Shown: positions 50,974 to 59,448 of the stretch, in pieces
Layout of the letters: every line of letters begins with the position of its first letter
Numbering within the stretch: position 1 is the stretch's first letter
Assembly: GCA_907165135.1 (NCBI GenBank)
Contig: OU015568.1
Span: forward strand, 4,464,001 to 4,528,000
DNA: 64,000 nt
Reading direction: 5' to 3'
Origin: Oikopleura dioica
Lineage: Eukaryota; Animalia; Chordata
Notes under the pieces: model-generated
The model's database searches: none
Told to the model about the DNA's origin: nothing
Seen by the model: only the letters and a program-made list of their open reading frames with translations
Made by a program: the position numbers and the translations under genes

Positions 50974-53900
50974 TTATGCATCCTGTTCACCAGGCATTCC
51001 CGGAATTTCAAAGGGATTCATGATGTTGCTCGGAGAAGCAGCTCGTATTCCATTTTTCTGAGGACTATCGGATTCTGCCATGACGGAGTTGGAGCTTGAG
51101 CGCATCAGGTAGTCGAAGTCGTCGGGGTCTTCCATTGTTGGATCGCCAGTTATCATGTCAGCGGGAGCTTTTTTCGGTTCAATTTCCGATCAATTAGTGA
51201 CAATCAAGAATTTTAATGGAACCTTCCTGAGTTTGCTTCTGGCTCAGCTTTGACTGTATCTTTCGCGAGCATCATTGCAGAAAACTCTTCCAGTTTTCTC
51301 TGAACTTCCAATTTATCTGCTTCGACTTTTCGCCTGATCTCCGCGGGGTCCATAAAGTCTACCCAATCTTTCGGATTGCTGACCCCAATCGGCATCGGGG
51401 GGATCGGCGGCTGCTCGACTTGCTGATGCTCGCCGGAGTAGAAGGCAGTTCCTCCAGGAGAATGGTAAGGATTTTGGGCGTTGAAGTCTTCATCTTGTTG
51501 AATCTTATCTTCCATGCTCACTGAAAAAATAGATCTTGATGAGATAAGGTAGATAATATTCCCCAGAAAATTGAAATTTTACGGTCTAAAGCGCCACATT
51601 TGACTGTATAAGTAGATGTACCAGACGATTTATGGAGCAATTTTTTTAAGCAAATGAAACATTTTTAGTCTTATACTTTTCCATTATTGTCCCTATTTCT
51701 GAAATGACACAGTATCATCAGTGATGATTCATCACTAATATGTTCAGATAATGTTTGAAGCTCAATAAATATTAATGAACTTACTCTGAATCATGGGAGG
51801 AATAGAAATATGACCATTTTCGTCATCTTCCATTCGCTCTTCATTTTCTCCTTTATCAGACCCTGTTGGAGTTAGATCTTGCATTTCGACCTCGCCACCG
51901 TCAAATGCTGGATTTGACTTGCCCTGTGCTCGATCAGCTTCCATTTGCTCGTAGGGATTTTTGATTGATTCGTAGTTCGTAAAGGCGGATTGATTCGAGA
52001 TAAGACCTTGTTCATCTTCGTCTGAAAAGGATGAGAAAAAGTCCAAATTAGACTTCATACCGGGAACGGATAAGAGTCCTTTAGCAGCAACGGCGACTCC
52101 AGTCACTCGTTTCTTCTGCTTATTGCTTCTGATCGAGTCCTGTCCTCCTCCTCCGTCTCCTGAAAAGTTCACGGCAACTGTTGCTGCAGCCACACCAATG
52201 CCCGTCACATTTTTCGTTGAGTTCTCGTCCGACTCATCATCTGGCTCTTCGTATGGCGATTTGAATTCGTTAGTCTATCGATTTTATGAGCTCTTTTCTC
52301 ACAAAGAAAATACCTGTTCAACAAGCATGCCGAATTCATCATCATCTGCGTCGAGGAAATCGTCATCGTAATCTTCATCATCATCATCGTCGAATTCGCT
52401 TTCTTCTAGCATTCGGTCCATTTCTTGTCGATGTTTCTAGAGACCATTTTATGAATGCAAGATGAAAGAAGGCCAACCTGAATGATGTTTTCTTTCAGCT
52501 CGAGTTGATCTTCAGCAAGCGACTTTTCGATTTTGACATCGATGTAGGCAATGTAATGGTACAATGTCGACAAACTATGAAATAAAATTGAGAGTACTCT
52601 GTATCAAAATATTCTCTTACCGATGCCATAGCATGCAGCCAAACTGGACGAAAATGATGACAATGTAAATGAATAGGAAAAACAGTGAAAACGGCTGAAG
52701 AACGAGGACTCTTTGATCTTCATCGTCAGAATTGCCGTTTCCGTAATCAGGAAATCCTATTCCAATATCTTTGAATGACGGTCCGGCCATACTTCGTGAG
52801 CGGTTGGTTGGAATCATTTTGAAATATGCCCCTCGCATTCGCATAAATTCATCTGGTGATTCGTCTTCTACGACTTCTCCGCATCCTGGCTGAGGGGTTA
52901 TTTAGCGTATTTATCGTAAAATCGATGGCTTACCAAGCTTATGTCCCCAAGCGGAATCTCTATTGACATCAACATGTAAGAGTACTTCAGAATCACGCAG
53001 GAAATGATGATCCACATGACATTGATGAAAATGTAGTACATAAACTTTTCATCTCTGAAGTTTGACATTTCTTCTGCAAGCCAGGCTTCGTGCTCCTTGA
53101 TTTTCTGGAAGTTCTTTCCCTTGTTTCTGATGCCTATGTAACCTTCTGTCGGGTCTTGCATAGTCTCCCAGAATGTTTGCTCGGGATTTGACAGCGTGTA
53201 GACTTTGCATCCTAAAAATTGATGAAGAAAAGTCATTTTCTTCCTTGATTTCAAAACTTACTCTTGTCAAAGGGCGCATTTTTGCCAATAATCCAGCTCA
53301 AATAATTCGTCCCACCAACTTCCTTGTAAAGCTTAATTTCTCGGTCCCGAACGTCTCCAAGAGTATATTCTTCCGAATAACCAATGGGTTTTGCTTGATA
53401 ACATGTTTTTCCCGTTTTCGGATTGATCATGTAGCTCTGCCAGTCATCAGCGCCGATCTGCCGAAGTTTTCTGATTTGGAAGCCGCCGTATAATCTCTCG
53501 TTCTTGATTTCTTTGTCGAATTCTCGCGGGTCAAGGTATTGCGCGTTCATACCGGTTTCATCGCCGATGATAGCTGTTTGTCGGGCGCCCATGAAGCCGG
53601 AATGCTCGAGCATGCTCTGAGGCACGGCGCTGTCACCATGAAGGAAATCGTTTATTGTATTTCTCGTCTCTTGGTCGACGGCTAAAAAGGTTCCTTTAGA
53701 AGCAACAGAGGCTGTGGTCAATCGTGGCTCTGCTTTTTCAACTCGTTCTGGTGCTGGAGGCGGTGGCGGTGGTGGCTGAGATGCAGGCGCTGGTTGCTCC
53801 TCAACCACTGGTTTTCCATGATTTTTCATCATATCAAGCACTTCATCTTTAATTCTGATTTCATATCTTGGATCTAAGCAAAGAACACAAGTGCAGTTTG

Positions 53901-56900
53901 TTCCATCCACATCTCCGGCGTTTTCCTTTGCGATTTCGTCGTCACTTTTGCCACAAAGTCGCTGCCAGAAGGTCTTTTTGATGCCTGTATCTGCTTTTTT
54001 CGCCTGCCTAGTACCCCAAGAGCAATCGTTCAGGTTAGCAATCGAGTAGATTTGAAGGAAAATGAAACAAGAGGGAATGAAAAGAAAGTAGATTACGCCG
54101 CAAATGATTGCATAGATGTCACCGTGAAGAAGCGCACCGAAAATATGGATAAAAGCCATGGCGGCGAAAAACAAGAAACTCGGGGAAAGAGGGCAATTGA
54201 CACCTTCGATGATGATTCCAATAAGGACAAGTGCCATGAGAAATGAAAACATAAGAGAGAACCAAGTCGCCAGGGAGAGCTGAAGCTCCCCGTCTTTTGA
54301 AATGTAGCAAGCGAAAGTGAAAATGGTCACAGGAGTTATGACAATTAGATAAGTCGCCCATCGCGGGAGTGCTCCACCGAGACCGAGGGCCAAAGCTTCG
54401 GCAACCATCATCATCGTCGTTGAAACACCAATAAGGGAGAAAACCAAAACTGTGAACTGATACATGATGTACGGGACCGAAATATACGGGTTCGACTTTC
54501 GAGCCATTTTCTGCTCAGCAACGAGATTCCAGATATTGGCCGTGGTCGATGGACCCCACCGACGCCGCTGCTTATAGAATGTTCCAAGATCTTCTGGAGC
54601 ATAAGTGTTGCAGTGAGAGGATCCTTCGTACTCGATTCGCCCGCCAGAAAAGAGCATGAGAGTACAGAGCCAACGATCTTCGCCCTGATCGTATTGAAGC
54701 TTTTCCATCGGATTTTGAGCGAGAGATTTGTACATGGCCATGACATTTGGGTTGTTGAGGTAACTGACTCTCATCAAAGAAAAGCATCCTAAAAATGAAT
54801 TTTTTTGAAAAAATTTTTTTGGCAAAGAAATGAAAACGATAAAGCTTTGATTTTAGAATTTATTGGGGCTCAGTTTTAACAGAGATTTTACAGTTTTCTT
54901 CGAAAAGTGGATCTGGAACAGAAATTGTGAAGTGTCTCTCGGAATTCGCGATCATGATCGTTGCGTTCCCTCTATCTTCCGGTTGGATTTCTTCACATGC
55001 TGTTGAGACAATTTCGTATTCTTCCTCTTCTTCGACGGCTGGTTCAGTCTTGACGATCACTGGTGGGTTAAACTGGGTGGACATTGGCTTGGATCGGCAA
55101 ATCTGGCTCCGCAGAGTCGAAGACAAGATGAAGTCTTTGATAGTCGAGTGCATCTTCTTATTGCACGCGTCGCAGGGACTGAAGATGACGACTGGGGAGA
55201 AGGGGATCTGGAAGGCGGTATTGACGAGGCAGCCGCATGGTTTTTTGATTGTTTCGACAAGTGGATTGTGCATTTCTTTCTTTTGACGAGTTGTTCTGTT
55301 TTTGCACCAGTTTTATTCAGATTTTTCTCTAGCGCCGTCATAGCGCAGCTGTCAGAAGAAAATAAAGTAGATAAAAATTCAGAGCAGCGATGGTCTGATT
55401 GTATCTTTATCAGAATTTGCAATCAAACATAAGGCCGTAAAAATCACCTGGTGAGCACAAAACGCAGCCCAAGACATGCTCTGCCGACTTCTGAAGCCAA
55501 TGACCGACGGCATACTCAAAGTTCTGATAAGCAACAAGCCATCCAGACCCTTTCGGATGAATAGCACCGCAACAAGCAGCCAATTTGTCATTCCTCATGC
55601 ATCTGTCCAGGACAAGTTCAAATGCTGGCGGGTCGAAATCGACGTCTCCATCGAGAGCGAGAATGAAGGATTTCTTCTTGTCGATGGTTTTCTTTGAAAA
55701 TGGAGTTTTTTGACGACAGGCGTCGATTTTCCAACCGATGAGGTAGTAAAGATACATGACCTGGGACCATCGTTTCCCTCTCTGGACCAAGTTCGCGTCT
55801 TTCAAGTGAATGACGAACGGATATCCAGCGATTTCATAAACGACTCTTCCTCCATAAGGAGTTCTGATGATCTTTCCATCTTTCAGCTGATTCGGGCTAA
55901 GGTAAGTTCCATCTCCATAGATATTCAAGACTTCTTTGAAAACACGCTGGAATTGCTTGACCCAATCGTTGAGCTCGAGCCACTCCGGGGCGTTGAGGAA
56001 ATCATCTGGCCCGTCTTTGTCCGCTTTTTTCGTCTCGAAGACATTGTCGAAGAAGATGTGCATTTCGAGATGATACTGATTCGGATCGTTGTTTCTTTCT
56101 TTTCTTCTCGCATGTCGGAGCAATTTGGAGACAGATCGCAAGAGCGTGGCCATTTCAAAATCTTCTTCGTGCCAAAGAGTGGTGCAAATGAAGATCATTG
56201 GGAATTCTTGTCCTTTATCCCAAAGAGTCGTTTTCTTGCCAGATGTCGGAGCTGATCCTTTCACTGTCGTCGTTCGAGCGGATTTTCGAGACATTGTCAT
56301 TCGCGTTGATCTTTTTGAAGATTCAGGATTGATTTTACTGAAAAAATTCATGAAAACTGAGAAGTCTTTAGTTAGAATCTCTTCCTTGATTTCCGATCTG
56401 GTTGAAATTTCTTCATTGCTTCTGACTGTAACTCAGCTTCGATGTCAACCGTTCTTCTATTCAGCAAGGTAAACGTAGAAGTACCGACGGGTCGATAACT
56501 CGGCAGCATGAACACATCTCGCTCGAGTGGATAAATCCACGATTCCGGATGCCAAATGTAATGAGTCAGGAATCCAAAGCTCAAAGCTCCGACAGCACCG
56601 ATCACGAGTGGAACGATGTGTTCGACACTGACGGAGAAGTTTTCATCGTTGGCGGATTCTTTCATCATATCAGCAATAGCGACTCCGACCAGCGCTAGAA
56701 TAGTGATCAATATTCGGTCTAAGAATCAATCCTACCTATGATGGGACCAACAATGCCAGGAATCGCAAAACCAGCGATTTGAAGATCAACCCGGACGGAA
56801 ACTTTTTGAAAATACGACGTCACCGCGCTTGAAATTCCAAAAACCCAGACCCACGTAGTGAAGCACTTGGGACTTTTATGATTCCAGAAATCATCGAAAG

Positions 56901-59448
56901 AGTTGCAGTCGCAATTCCGCTCGTATTCATTCCAATCTTGGTTGCTCATTAGCGGGTTGTCTTCGAGGTTGTTAAAGAAAGTGTAGAAGTACCAGCAGCC
57001 GACGATGGCGGCGATTCGGAAGGGGGTGACGCCGAAGTAGGCCACGATAAGGGAGAGATCTGCGTTTTGAGGAAGGCCTTTTAGTGGATATTTATTTTCT
57101 TGGATTTCAATGACTTCAATCACTCTACTTATGATGAGATGTCTAATTATTATTTATCGCAAATTCGAAGAAGTAAAAAACCAATTAATCACTGCTTAAG
57201 GGGGTAGAAACAGCTTCTTTCCGAAAAAGGCGATTTTTGACCGGCGCTACAGTCAAGAGAATCTTACATTTTCAAATTTTCTCTTCTGGTTTAGATAGAT
57301 ACATCTTAGATCTAGGAGCATCTCCCTCGAAATTTGTTTTAGTCATCAAATTTTTGAGTAAGCGGGCTCAGAAGCAGCTCATCTCTCCGAAATTCACTAT
57401 TTTCGCAAATTTTTAAACACGTATATCTCGAGTCCCCTGATAGTTAAACAAATTTCATGCACATTTTTGTTAAGCTCAACCCTTTTTCTAGGAACATTTA
57501 TGAGGAAATTCCGTGAACATAAATAAATCTTATGTTTTCTTTTATGTAGCTGCAGTCCAAAATCGAGAAAGCTGTTTCTACCCCCTTAAAACTCTCTTAT
57601 GGTTTCTCTTATCCATTTCCTGTAAGGCAGTCTTTATATTTCGAGATTCCTCTGACTTTCTCCGACAAGCTCAAAATCTTCTTCGACCCAGAGCAAAGCG
57701 CAAAATTCACCCAATTTATCAAACTCATCAAAGCGACGCAAATAATCGCCACAATTGCAATGACTGGATCTTCGATTCCGAAAAAGAAGAGAAATACTCC
57801 GACGCACCAGAGAATCAGTAGCGAGAAACGAAGAAAGTACATGATGATTTTTCGTGTTGTCGGTCCACAGCCGAGGCAAAAGGAGGATTCTTCGGTTGGG
57901 GCGAAAATGAGCATGATGATGGGCATGATCGTCGGGAAAAGAAGCATCGCAATCGTCATCGTTCTCGAGACCTCCGGCGCAACAATGAAGAGGAAAACTC
58001 CCATTCCGGCGGTGTAGAGAAATTCGACGAGGAGAATGATGAAGAACTGAGACCAGCTCGGGCGGTCAGCTTTTTTGAAAGTGATGAAATAGAAGGCGTA
58101 CAAGAAGCACCAGAACTCTGGGACGAGAAGCACCCAAAAGACCATTTGAGAATTGTGAAACATGATTGCGGATCCGTGCTGCTCCATTTTGCAAGGTCCA
58201 CTTTTCGAGTTCAAATTTGAAAAATGGAAGAGAGCGCAAATTGAAAGATTTTTTTCAAAAACCATAAAAAGAATTAATTTTTCTTTCTTTTTGGGGAAGT
58301 GTCTAGAACCTTCAAAAAATCGACAAATTTTGCGTGGTAATTTTCAACCAATCAGAAGCCTCGATTCGGCGAACCGGCCAATTAGCAGCCCAGTAGCCGC
58401 CCACGCAAAAGTTGTCGAAATTTTATGTCGGTTCTAGACATTTTCCCTTCTTTTTTACCCAAAAATAGCGAAAATAATTCATCAATAATTTTAATTATAA
58501 AGAAATTTTCGATTTTAAACTCGTCCGTATCATGCGTAAAACTAGTATTAAGCATGGCGCCAATCATTGCGGAAGAAACGTATTGCGCGACGACTGAAGC
58601 CATGGAAAACACAAAGAATACGACGGTAAAGACGTGATGCCAGAAAATTCTCCATCGATGGGGCCAAGGATCTGGCAGAGCAAAATCAGTAATTGCTGGC
58701 TCGATTATTGCCTTGTCCCATGGTTCGACGTTTTCTTTCTTTGACTCGCGCATTGAGCTAGAATTTTGATGATGAAAATTTCGGCGATTCTGGAATTTTG
58801 ATCATGAGCTCGTGAAATGAAAAATTCAGGTGCCAGCTGAAGCTATCCGAGCTTTGACGTAGAATCAATCATTCGCCCCTGCATGGGATGGCCTTTGGCT
58901 TTAACGGCAGCGCTATTTACGATTCATAAAGATCAAGCGTGCCCAGATTGAGTAACTCCATGCGTCAAAAGATGCTCCTTTCGAATCATTGAATAGGACT
59001 TACGTTTGGGAAGGTCGAGGTCCTCCGCCGGGACCTTGACCTGATGGTAGACCGACTTTGATGGCTGATTTTGGCACTTCATCGGGAGGGGCGGGTTGAT
59101 AGACTGTCTTTCGGATCGTGCTTTTGGAAGTTTTTAAAGAAGAAAATTGATCGAAAATCGACTCGAAAATTTAAATAAATTTCGGTTATTAAAAAATTTT
59201 TCATGGAAGAAAATCTTCTTTTTCGATTAAAAACTGTGCCTGTGCTCTTTTTCCACAACATCTTCTGTAAATTTCACGCTCTTCCTTGGCTTCGACCCTG
59301 TATCATAAGCTGGCGGTGATCCATCTAAACTTCCATTATTCGGACTATTCCCTTCATTGGTATTTTTCAGAACTCCATGAGGAAGTGGCTCAATTCTCGA
59401 CTTTCGCCTTCCGAATTGAACCTTTTTTGGAGCCACTGGCTCTGGCAT
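50974..59448 (-). CDS. CHS: Chitin synthase (GT2), multi-exon
   Basis: CTTLWHE, HIFFD, HLKD, RGKRWSQVMYLYY, LDGDVDF, ACCGAIHP, YQNFEYAVGHWLQKSAEHVLGCVLCSPGCFSLMR, QYDQGEDRWLCTL, QRRRW, ANLNDCSWGTR; N- and C-terminal TM clusters. Exon 1 59240-59448 (GC-AG intron 59121-59239), exon 2 59004-59120, exon 3 58521-58757. The final exon assignment is uncertain. Confidence 0.96.
54860..55341 (-). CDS. Candidate nested same-strand gene inside chitin synthase intron 54789-55447
   Basis: Pyrimidine-rich acceptor ttttcttctgacag (AG at 55349-55350); overlapping ORFs from ATG 55341 (94 aa, KRKK, RSPSP) and ATG 55273 (137 aa, CGC..CDAC, two VKTEP motifs, acidic run); AATAAA overlapping the stop (54859-54864). 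Confidence 0.55.
57200..57585. mobile_element. 386 bp MITE with TTAA TSD and GGG termini (Kolobok-like) in a chitin synthase intron
   Basis: ttaa|gggggtagaaacagctt ... aagctgtttctaccccc|ttaa (TTAA at 57196-57199 and 57586-57589). Confidence 0.85.
58293..58447 (+). mobile_element. MITE family A copy in chitin synthase intron 58201-58520 (8 bp TSD ttcttttt)
   Basis: ggggaagtgtctagaacc...gtcggttctagacattttccc; ttcttttt at 58285-58292 and 58448-58455. Confidence 0.85.

Follow-up and report, generated by a model that had tools for sequence, protein, structure and literature searches.

We analysed a window of 64,000 nucleotides (nt) from the short arm of the pseudo-autosomal region (PAR; 4.464-4.528 Mb) of Oikopleura dioica OKI2018_I69, which contains a chitin synthase gene and, inside one of its introns, a much smaller reading frame on the same strand. 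Both lie on the minus strand, as do all the exons, introns, reading frames and signals for which window positions are given below. According to Bliznina et al. 2021 (PMC8008620), the genome comprises 64.3 Mbp in 19 scaffolds; the median intron is 49 bp long, and 11% of introns are non-canonical. The chitin synthase was treated exon by exon, not as one joined protein. A single-cell preprint of 2026 (10.64898/2026.03.31.715263) describes chitin synthase genes from perioral and giant Eisen cells. The host intron (54789-55447, PAR:4,518,789-4,519,447; gt at 55447-55446, ag at 54790-54789) is 659 nt long, lies in phase 1 and splits the coding sequence between CSPG and CFSL. Both flanking exons match the Pfam family Chitin_synth_2. 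The 5' exon (55448-56351) ends in ...LGCVLCSPG (PF03142, E 1.6e-07) and has 96% amino-acid identity to its counterpart in L024, one of the environmental contigs described below. The 3' exon (53254-54788) starts with CFSLMRVSYL, holds the QRRRW motif (PF03142, E 3.7e-11) and is 94-99% identical to those of L025 and L023. The borders agree with those given in an earlier account made from the sequence alone (hereafter the preliminary description). The intron position is common to L023, L024, L025, L028, L035 and L036, the last being a repeat of L024. A search of the genome's own contigs found the 659-nt segment once, and neither inverted nor direct terminal repeats were found at its ends.

The intron holds an intronless open reading frame (ORF) of 137 codons plus a stop (54860-55273; codons 55273-54863, stop 54862-54860). 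A polyadenylation signal, AATAAA, overlaps the stop codon (54859-54864), and in all relatives of the gene an AATAAA stands at the stop or no more than about 15 nt past it. ORF and signal are thus where the preliminary description had placed them, and the features it listed in the translation (CGC and CDAC cysteines, two VKTEP motifs and an EEEEEY run) are all present. In 5000 first-order Markov resamplings of the intron, a sense-strand ORF of at least 137 codons starting with ATG arose in 0.44%, and an ORF of that length in any frame in 1.3%. With a codon model trained on 31 long ORFs out of 244 kb of the O. dioica genome, the 137-codon ORF scored a margin of +0.164 nat per codon, in frame. 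This corresponds to the 55th percentile of true exon chunks and exceeds the margin of all 48 spurious ORFs. The plus-strand ORFs failed the same test. So did an overlapping 94-aa ORF in another frame (55057-55341; margin -0.078), to which the preliminary description had drawn attention. It exists, but its ATG at 55341 lies 7 nt past the supposed acceptor AG rather than 9 nt, and it has no counterpart in the relatives; we read it as a chance ORF. We also considered whether the internal acceptor might fuse the longer ORF to chitin synthase, and rejected this: a splice from 55448 to 55348 reaches a TGA after three codons.

A word-index protein search with the single ORF was blank. A full HMMER scan of 1.84 billion representatives returned two homologues of 134 and 141 aa (E ~5e-17), which align over the whole length at 38-39% identity. 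A profile search (E 1e-21 to 1e-64) extended these to eight clusters in total, six beyond the first two, and the cluster listing gave more members. All come from marine metagenomes (JGI, and ENA including Tara Oceans) or from Logan assemblies. Among the ~15 billion proteins searched, no homologue had an NCBI or UniProt source or a name beyond 'hypothetical protein'. Judged by this lack of named or sourced matches in the collections searched, the family is apparently unannotated and restricted to Oikopleura. We compared eleven contigs carrying ten distinct copies; the placement of the metagenome contigs in Oikopleura is based only on chitin synthase exons with 94-99% identity and on the synteny of a lectin locus.

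The copies fall into two groups. Group A comprises L023, L025, L028 and L035, which are intact, and L024 (= L036), which is frameshifted. All of them lie in the same chitin synthase intron and on the same strand as the window copy, 85-105 nt before the CFSLMRVSYL exon, which then follows as ...ag/G CFSLMRVSYLNNP... (the slash marks the splice junction). The host intron of L024 measures 676 nt. Group B comprises L026, L027, L029, L037 and L038 and lies outside chitin synthase. In L026, L027, L037 and L038 the copy stands ~260 nt past the stop of a gene with a SUEL-lectin domain (Pfam PF02140), ~200 nt past that gene's own AATAAA, and is followed by the 3' end of a convergently oriented gene. 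The L029 contig stops short of the lectin gene, and its downstream flank is common with the other group B copies. The window copy is 33-38% identical to both groups, and A and B are 43-49% identical to each other. At the DNA level, homology between A and B begins ~95 nt ahead of the ATG and extends as far as the stop. Contigs of both groups occur in the same samples (L024 and L029 in JGI 3300009436; L035 and L037 in ENA ERZ27250226), and divergence within the two groups runs parallel. In the Okinawan genome itself, both the protein and the family profile were used to look for paralogues; they recovered only the intronic copy and weak matches to acidic low-complexity stretches.

These homologues are under purifying selection. 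We estimated the ratio of nonsynonymous to synonymous divergence (dN/dS) by the Nei-Gojobori method, only between copies with unsaturated dS (0.35-0.9), and entered disrupted copies with an X at the break. Within groups A and B, dN/dS was 0.10-0.34; the upper bounds from bootstrapping stayed below 0.6, and Fisher tests gave p values of 1e-5 to 1e-13. Length differences among the intact copies amount to whole codons throughout. When this genome is compared with the relatives, the host gene is saturated at synonymous sites (proportion of synonymous differences, pS, 0.62-0.76), and the nested ORF stays open in the window copy despite this divergence. Over the same comparison, dN is 0.007-0.05 for the host chitin synthase and 0.6-0.7 for the nested gene; the nested protein therefore evolves 15-90 times faster than its host.

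Despite this rate, 26 positions are invariant in the family, and all are kept in the window copy. They include M1-H-N-P, C13-G-C15, C34, C37, M41, S43, L54-R55 and N110-S-E..F115-T.S118. The product of 137 aa consists of an N-terminal four-cysteine module (CxC-18-CxxC), an acidic linker and a conserved C-terminal motif, NSE..FT.S. The acidic run recurs in relatives as EEEEFE or DDDEDLFE. In an AlphaFold2 model built from a seven-sequence alignment, residues 1-45 (predicted local distance difference test, pLDDT, 66-81) form three strands and a helix; the CxC falls between strands and the CxxC where the helix begins. The acidic linker (residues 58-87) is predicted to be disordered. Four invariant cysteines in this arrangement, a knuckle between strands and a CxxC at the start of a helix, are modelled much as in Cys4 treble-clef and zinc-ribbon modules, and the module probably binds zinc. 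It differs from them in that its first pair is CxC, not CxxC, and in that no Pfam family or Protein Data Bank (PDB) chain matches it by sequence or fold. The VKTEP motifs, which the preliminary description took as SUMO-consensus sites of a small nuclear protein, occur only in the window copy; the relatives have IIKTPV or no lysine there. Because no relative has VKTEP, the SUMO and nuclear readings lack support from comparison.

We aligned the regions upstream of the ATG in the window, group A and group B. A block is common to all three, although neutral sequence is otherwise unalignable, and its elements keep one order: a CANCTG box, a pyrimidine-rich stretch, a second CANCTG box, CGCTAGA, TATAAAA and the ATG. 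The distal part (55384-55412) is more weakly conserved; in the window it holds the GATA-like TGATAAAG and a degenerate first CANCTG box (TCGCTGC), and its likeness to the GATAAG / CATCAAAG of groups A and B was judged by eye. The second CANCTG box (55346-55351) reads CAGCTG in the window and in group B, and CACCTG, CATCTG or CAACTG in group A. Its AG at 55350-55349 is the one that the preliminary description had called a strong internal acceptor (55349). The pyrimidine tract and CAG of an acceptor are indeed present, but the AG belongs to the CANCTG box and is not conserved in group A. Among the other AGs upstream of the ATG, the one in CTAGA is conserved, and further ones occur between TATA and ATG. 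The next element, the GGCGCTAGAGA box (55326-55336), has the core CGCTAGA, which is invariant in the eight upstream regions in which it was judged. This core follows the second CANCTG box by 11 nt in the window and by 25-26 nt in A and B.

CGCTAGA and TATA are 13-15 nt apart, except in L027, where the presence of a 10-nt insertion makes the distance 24 nt. From CTAGA to the ATG we measured 51-61 nt in nine of the ten copies and 68 nt in L027, where the insertion adds a second CTAG at 61 nt. The TATA position lies 37-51 nt before the ATG in all copies and is occupied by TATAAAAA or TATAAAAG in group A, by TATAAAAT or TATAAAGT in group B and by AATAAAAC in the window, where AATAAAA (55311-55317, 44 nt before the ATG) stands in the place of the relatives' TATAAAA. 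In the sharp, adult-specific promoters of O. dioica, TATA boxes are found 28-31 nt upstream of the transcription start (PMC6389100). The CTAGA/TATA/ATG geometry fits such a core promoter, and would predict a 5' untranslated region (UTR) of 5-20 nt. A second published element of this species is the male-specific TCTAGA, which is embedded in T-rich sequence and precedes the start site by 40-50 nt (Danks et al. 2018, PMC6389100). The nested gene resembles promoters of that kind, and the promoters internal to operons (PMC6389100), in having a CTAGA box ~45 nt before the expected start within a region that is already transcribed, and its AG/A, too, might additionally serve for trans-splicing. The distance to the ATG would also fit. 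In contrast to TCTAGA, all copies read CGCTAGA(G/A)A, are G+C-rich and combine the box with a TATA box, whereas the male promoters are treated as a class apart from TATA promoters. Because it is GCTAGA in a G+C-rich context, the box is not the published element.

Taken together, purifying selection in the relatives, the invariant residues and exon-like codon usage support the proposed nested gene on the host's strand as real and protein-coding, and our confidence that this nested gene is real and conserved is high. The fuller statement, a genuine lineage-restricted intronless gene that is nested in chitin synthase and transcribed from its own promoter, we consider probable. Under this reading the gene would be a self-contained unit of ~0.6 kb. 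The two CANCTG boxes, the invariant CGCTAGA and the TATA box, degenerate here, would set the start of transcription 5-20 nt before the ATG, and the AATAAA at the stop would supply the 3' end. Transcription from this promoter would proceed independently of chitin synthase, and the host would splice the whole unit out. We favour an autonomous promoter because the upstream block is common to all copies, including those that are not nested, and because purifying selection acts on the gene outside chitin synthase as well. If the promoter is its own, the nested gene is probably independent of host RNA.

Several observations weigh against this reading. The branch leading to the window copy is very long (3.1 changes per site), which makes dN/dS unmeasurable for that copy alone, and selection on it is argued from ORF integrity, invariant residues and codon usage rather than from dN/dS. 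Two of the contigs, L024 and L036, have one additional T in a T-run of the nested copy and hence a frameshift; this is not an assembly slip in L024, because it is repeated in L036, an independent Logan contig. In L026, from Tara Oceans, a TGA replaces the TGT codon of the invariant Cys15 (L026:385-387). Its near-twin L038, from another Tara sample, is intact, and the TGA may mark a null allele that segregates at the group B copy. A frameshifted lineage and a nonsense allele together imply that the gene is dispensable in some backgrounds. The case for the promoter is one of conservation only. The TATA of the window copy is degenerate, the predicted 5' UTR would be very short, and the combination CGCTAGAR-N6-14-TATAAAA gave three matches genome-wide against two in the control. 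As it is not enriched, this composite is not a recognised promoter class. The AlphaFold2 model is poor overall (mean pLDDT 55). Pfam searches with the ORF and all family members, down to E 10, gave nothing meaningful, and no usable match came from a profile search of PDB, from Foldseek against PDB or from the ESM Atlas.

The preliminary description had pictured the locus as an intronic operon, in which a nested gene without a promoter is cut from the chitin synthase pre-mRNA by spliced-leader (SL) trans-splicing and its AATAAA, so that the two products compete and a built-in switch results. Its premise of a trans-splicing animal is sound, since SL trans-splicing, operons and internal promoters within operons are all documented in O. 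dioica (PMC6389100). The locus also offers candidate sites for it. A pyrimidine tract and CAG lead to 55349 in the window, and an equally good one is present in group B. In the invariant CGCTAG/A, an A comes directly after the AG, as is preferred for trans-splicing, and in 89 O. dioica promoters the AGA of TCTAGA reportedly coincides with a trans-splice site (PMC6389100). Nested and group B copies both lie downstream of transcription on the same strand, and in this, and in belonging to a trans-splicing animal, they resemble the downstream cistrons of SL-resolved operons in O. dioica and Caenorhabditis elegans. The nested gene differs from such cistrons in lying within an intron rather than past the 3' end of the upstream gene, and in having an unconserved candidate acceptor and a conserved TATA. 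The AG at 55350-55349 is replaced in group A (CACCTG, CATCTG, CAACTG), and the tag directly before CGCTAGA is absent in L025. A cistron without a promoter would not need a TATA at a fixed distance from its ATG. Operon genes of O. dioica are generally only tens of nucleotides apart, and the group B copies, which keep the upstream block, work outside chitin synthase ~200 nt past the AATAAA of the lectin gene. Nothing links expression of the nested gene to chitin synthase. We therefore consider the intronic operon, with its SL release and switch, improbable. Judging from sequence, the locus instead appears to hold what the preliminary description had named as the outcome contrary to its own proposal, an internally promoted gene independent of chitin synthase. 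A mixed arrangement, with the gene's own promoter used in one tissue, for example the male germ line, and SL release at CTAG/A where chitin synthase is expressed, seems to us somewhat less probable still. The same double use has been described for the 89 promoters just mentioned (Danks et al. 2018, PMC6389100), and a start of transcription 40-50 nt downstream of the invariant CTAGA would agree with the 51-61 nt that separate it from the ATG in nine of ten copies. The box is, however, GCTAGA and G+C-rich as against TCTAGA and T-rich, and the motif combination is not enriched in the genome. We give similarly little credence to the specific form in which CGCTAG/A would act both as a core-promoter element and as an SL acceptor while polyadenylation at 54859-54864 would end host transcripts before the QRRRW exon. 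If that were true, there would be real competition between host and guest, conserved since before the O. dioica lineages split.

Two further explanations accept the intron as it is and question the ORF. The window ORF could be a decaying or non-functional remnant under relaxed constraint, of a gene that works only in the relatives. The very long terminal branch, with 33-38% identity to all relatives, the degenerate TATA of the window and the disrupted copies in other lineages would all fit. We nonetheless regard decay as quite unlikely: the 137 codons are open despite saturated synonymous divergence, all 26 family-invariant residues are present, codons are used as in real exons of this genome, and this is the sole copy that the genome has. 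That the ORF is a product of chance, a transposon fragment or a retrocopy in a long intron is scarcely credible. An ORF of such size does arise in 0.4-1.3% of resampled introns, and two other long introns of this chitin synthase are filled by miniature inverted-repeat transposable elements (MITEs). Against this stand purifying selection on homologues in at least three lineages, the single copy of the segment, and the absence from it of terminal inverted or direct repeats and of a poly(A) tail remnant. A transposable-element or retrocopy origin is ruled out by the single copy, the missing terminal repeats and the selected homologues. The multicopy transposable-element fragment that the preliminary description had allowed for is likewise at odds with a segment that is single copy and without terminal repeats.

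The simplest account of the history of this gene would make the chitin synthase intron its ancestral home, shared by the Okinawan and other lineages. Group B would then have arisen later, by duplication in lineages other than the Okinawan one, and one A copy would have decayed afterwards. The rooting is uncertain, because the window copy is on a very long branch. Since A-B homology reaches ~95 nt upstream of the ATG, the group B duplicate took the upstream block along. The orthologous lectin locus of the Okinawan genome (L030; G000:C1, ~2.65 Mb) has a 138-nt spacer where the relatives have ~700 nt, and no trace of the nested gene was found in this spacer. The spacer does hold TTTTCTAGCGCTTCTTTTT (L030, G000:C1:2651100-2654210, minus ~1345-1325), which equals the GCGCTAGAA box of the family when read as its reverse complement and is surrounded by T-rich sequence. 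This could be a remnant, a promoter element of a neighbouring gene or a coincidence, for which we estimate a chance of ~0.3% in an interval of this size.

The remaining introns of the chitin synthase give the host intron its context. The preliminary description had its neighbours as mostly under 100 bp. One of them, a GT..AG intron at 56695-56735, is indeed only 41 nt long, in keeping with the species median of 49 bp, but two others measure ~300 nt and up to ~530 nt. We infer the short intron from the restoration of the reading frame and from a 42-nt in-frame counterpart in L024. Because this counterpart is in frame, gene callers translate it as coding sequence (KLSALDSISIIFL). Each of the two longer introns carries a multicopy MITE. 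The first, of up to ~530 nt, lies between ~57609 and 57082 and has an apparently non-canonical donor (G/GA). Its MITE (57196-57589) is 394 bp long with perfect 21-nt terminal inverted repeats (TTAAGGGGGTAGAAACAGCTT), and enlarges the intron relative to L024, where it measures up to ~190 nt. At least 40 copies at 90-99% identity occur across all large contigs (128 first-look candidates), and the element accordingly looks young and active. The second, of ~300 nt (roughly 58214-58519), interrupts the first large exon (THDT / GPCKMEQHG). Its borders are approximate, with ambiguous donors that look non-canonical. This intron is specific to the window: it has no counterpart in L024 and L036, which both read straight through. 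Its core is a ~160-bp foldback MITE (58285-58448) with two TCTAGA sites and at least 40 copies at 83-90% identity (504 first-look candidates). Long introns in the compact O. dioica genome thus have at least two causes, a resident gene here and MITEs in two neighbouring long introns. In L024 and L036 we observed a further change, the downstream chitin synthase exon, which is broken after ...LQYDQ by unrelated sequence (GCAGGGCTCTAAATTCGCAATGCGAATTCGC...; L024:6006-6121, L036:4155-4188). The interruption is identical in the two independent assemblies, which represent the lineage with the frameshifted nested copy, and is probably a lineage-specific insertion or a new intron.

Same-strand intron-nested genes have been described in Drosophila, C. 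elegans and vertebrates. The gene found here appears to share their general form: a complete small gene in one intron, on the same strand, with its own polyadenylation signal and an apparent promoter. It differs from them in that the guest nearly fills its host intron although the median intron of the genome is 49 bp, in that nesting has been kept across saturated synonymous divergence, and in that the guest belongs to no known family. Same-strand nesting is thus a known kind of arrangement, of which the guest family is new and the nesting conserved. 'Intron-nested genes' have also been named as a trait of compact genomes such as that of O. dioica (bioRxiv 10.64898/2025.12.04.692336).

Gene order among O. 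dioica lineages has been reported to be extremely scrambled (PMC11067885), and their synonymous sites are saturated; the chitin synthase and its guest have remained a pair across these lineages. A paralogue has moved to a new locus, accompanied by ~100 nt from upstream of the gene. Small genes that reside in introns can escape annotation pipelines, and this one adds an apparently unannotated, Oikopleura-restricted family with four invariant cysteines and a protein rate 15-90 times that of its host.

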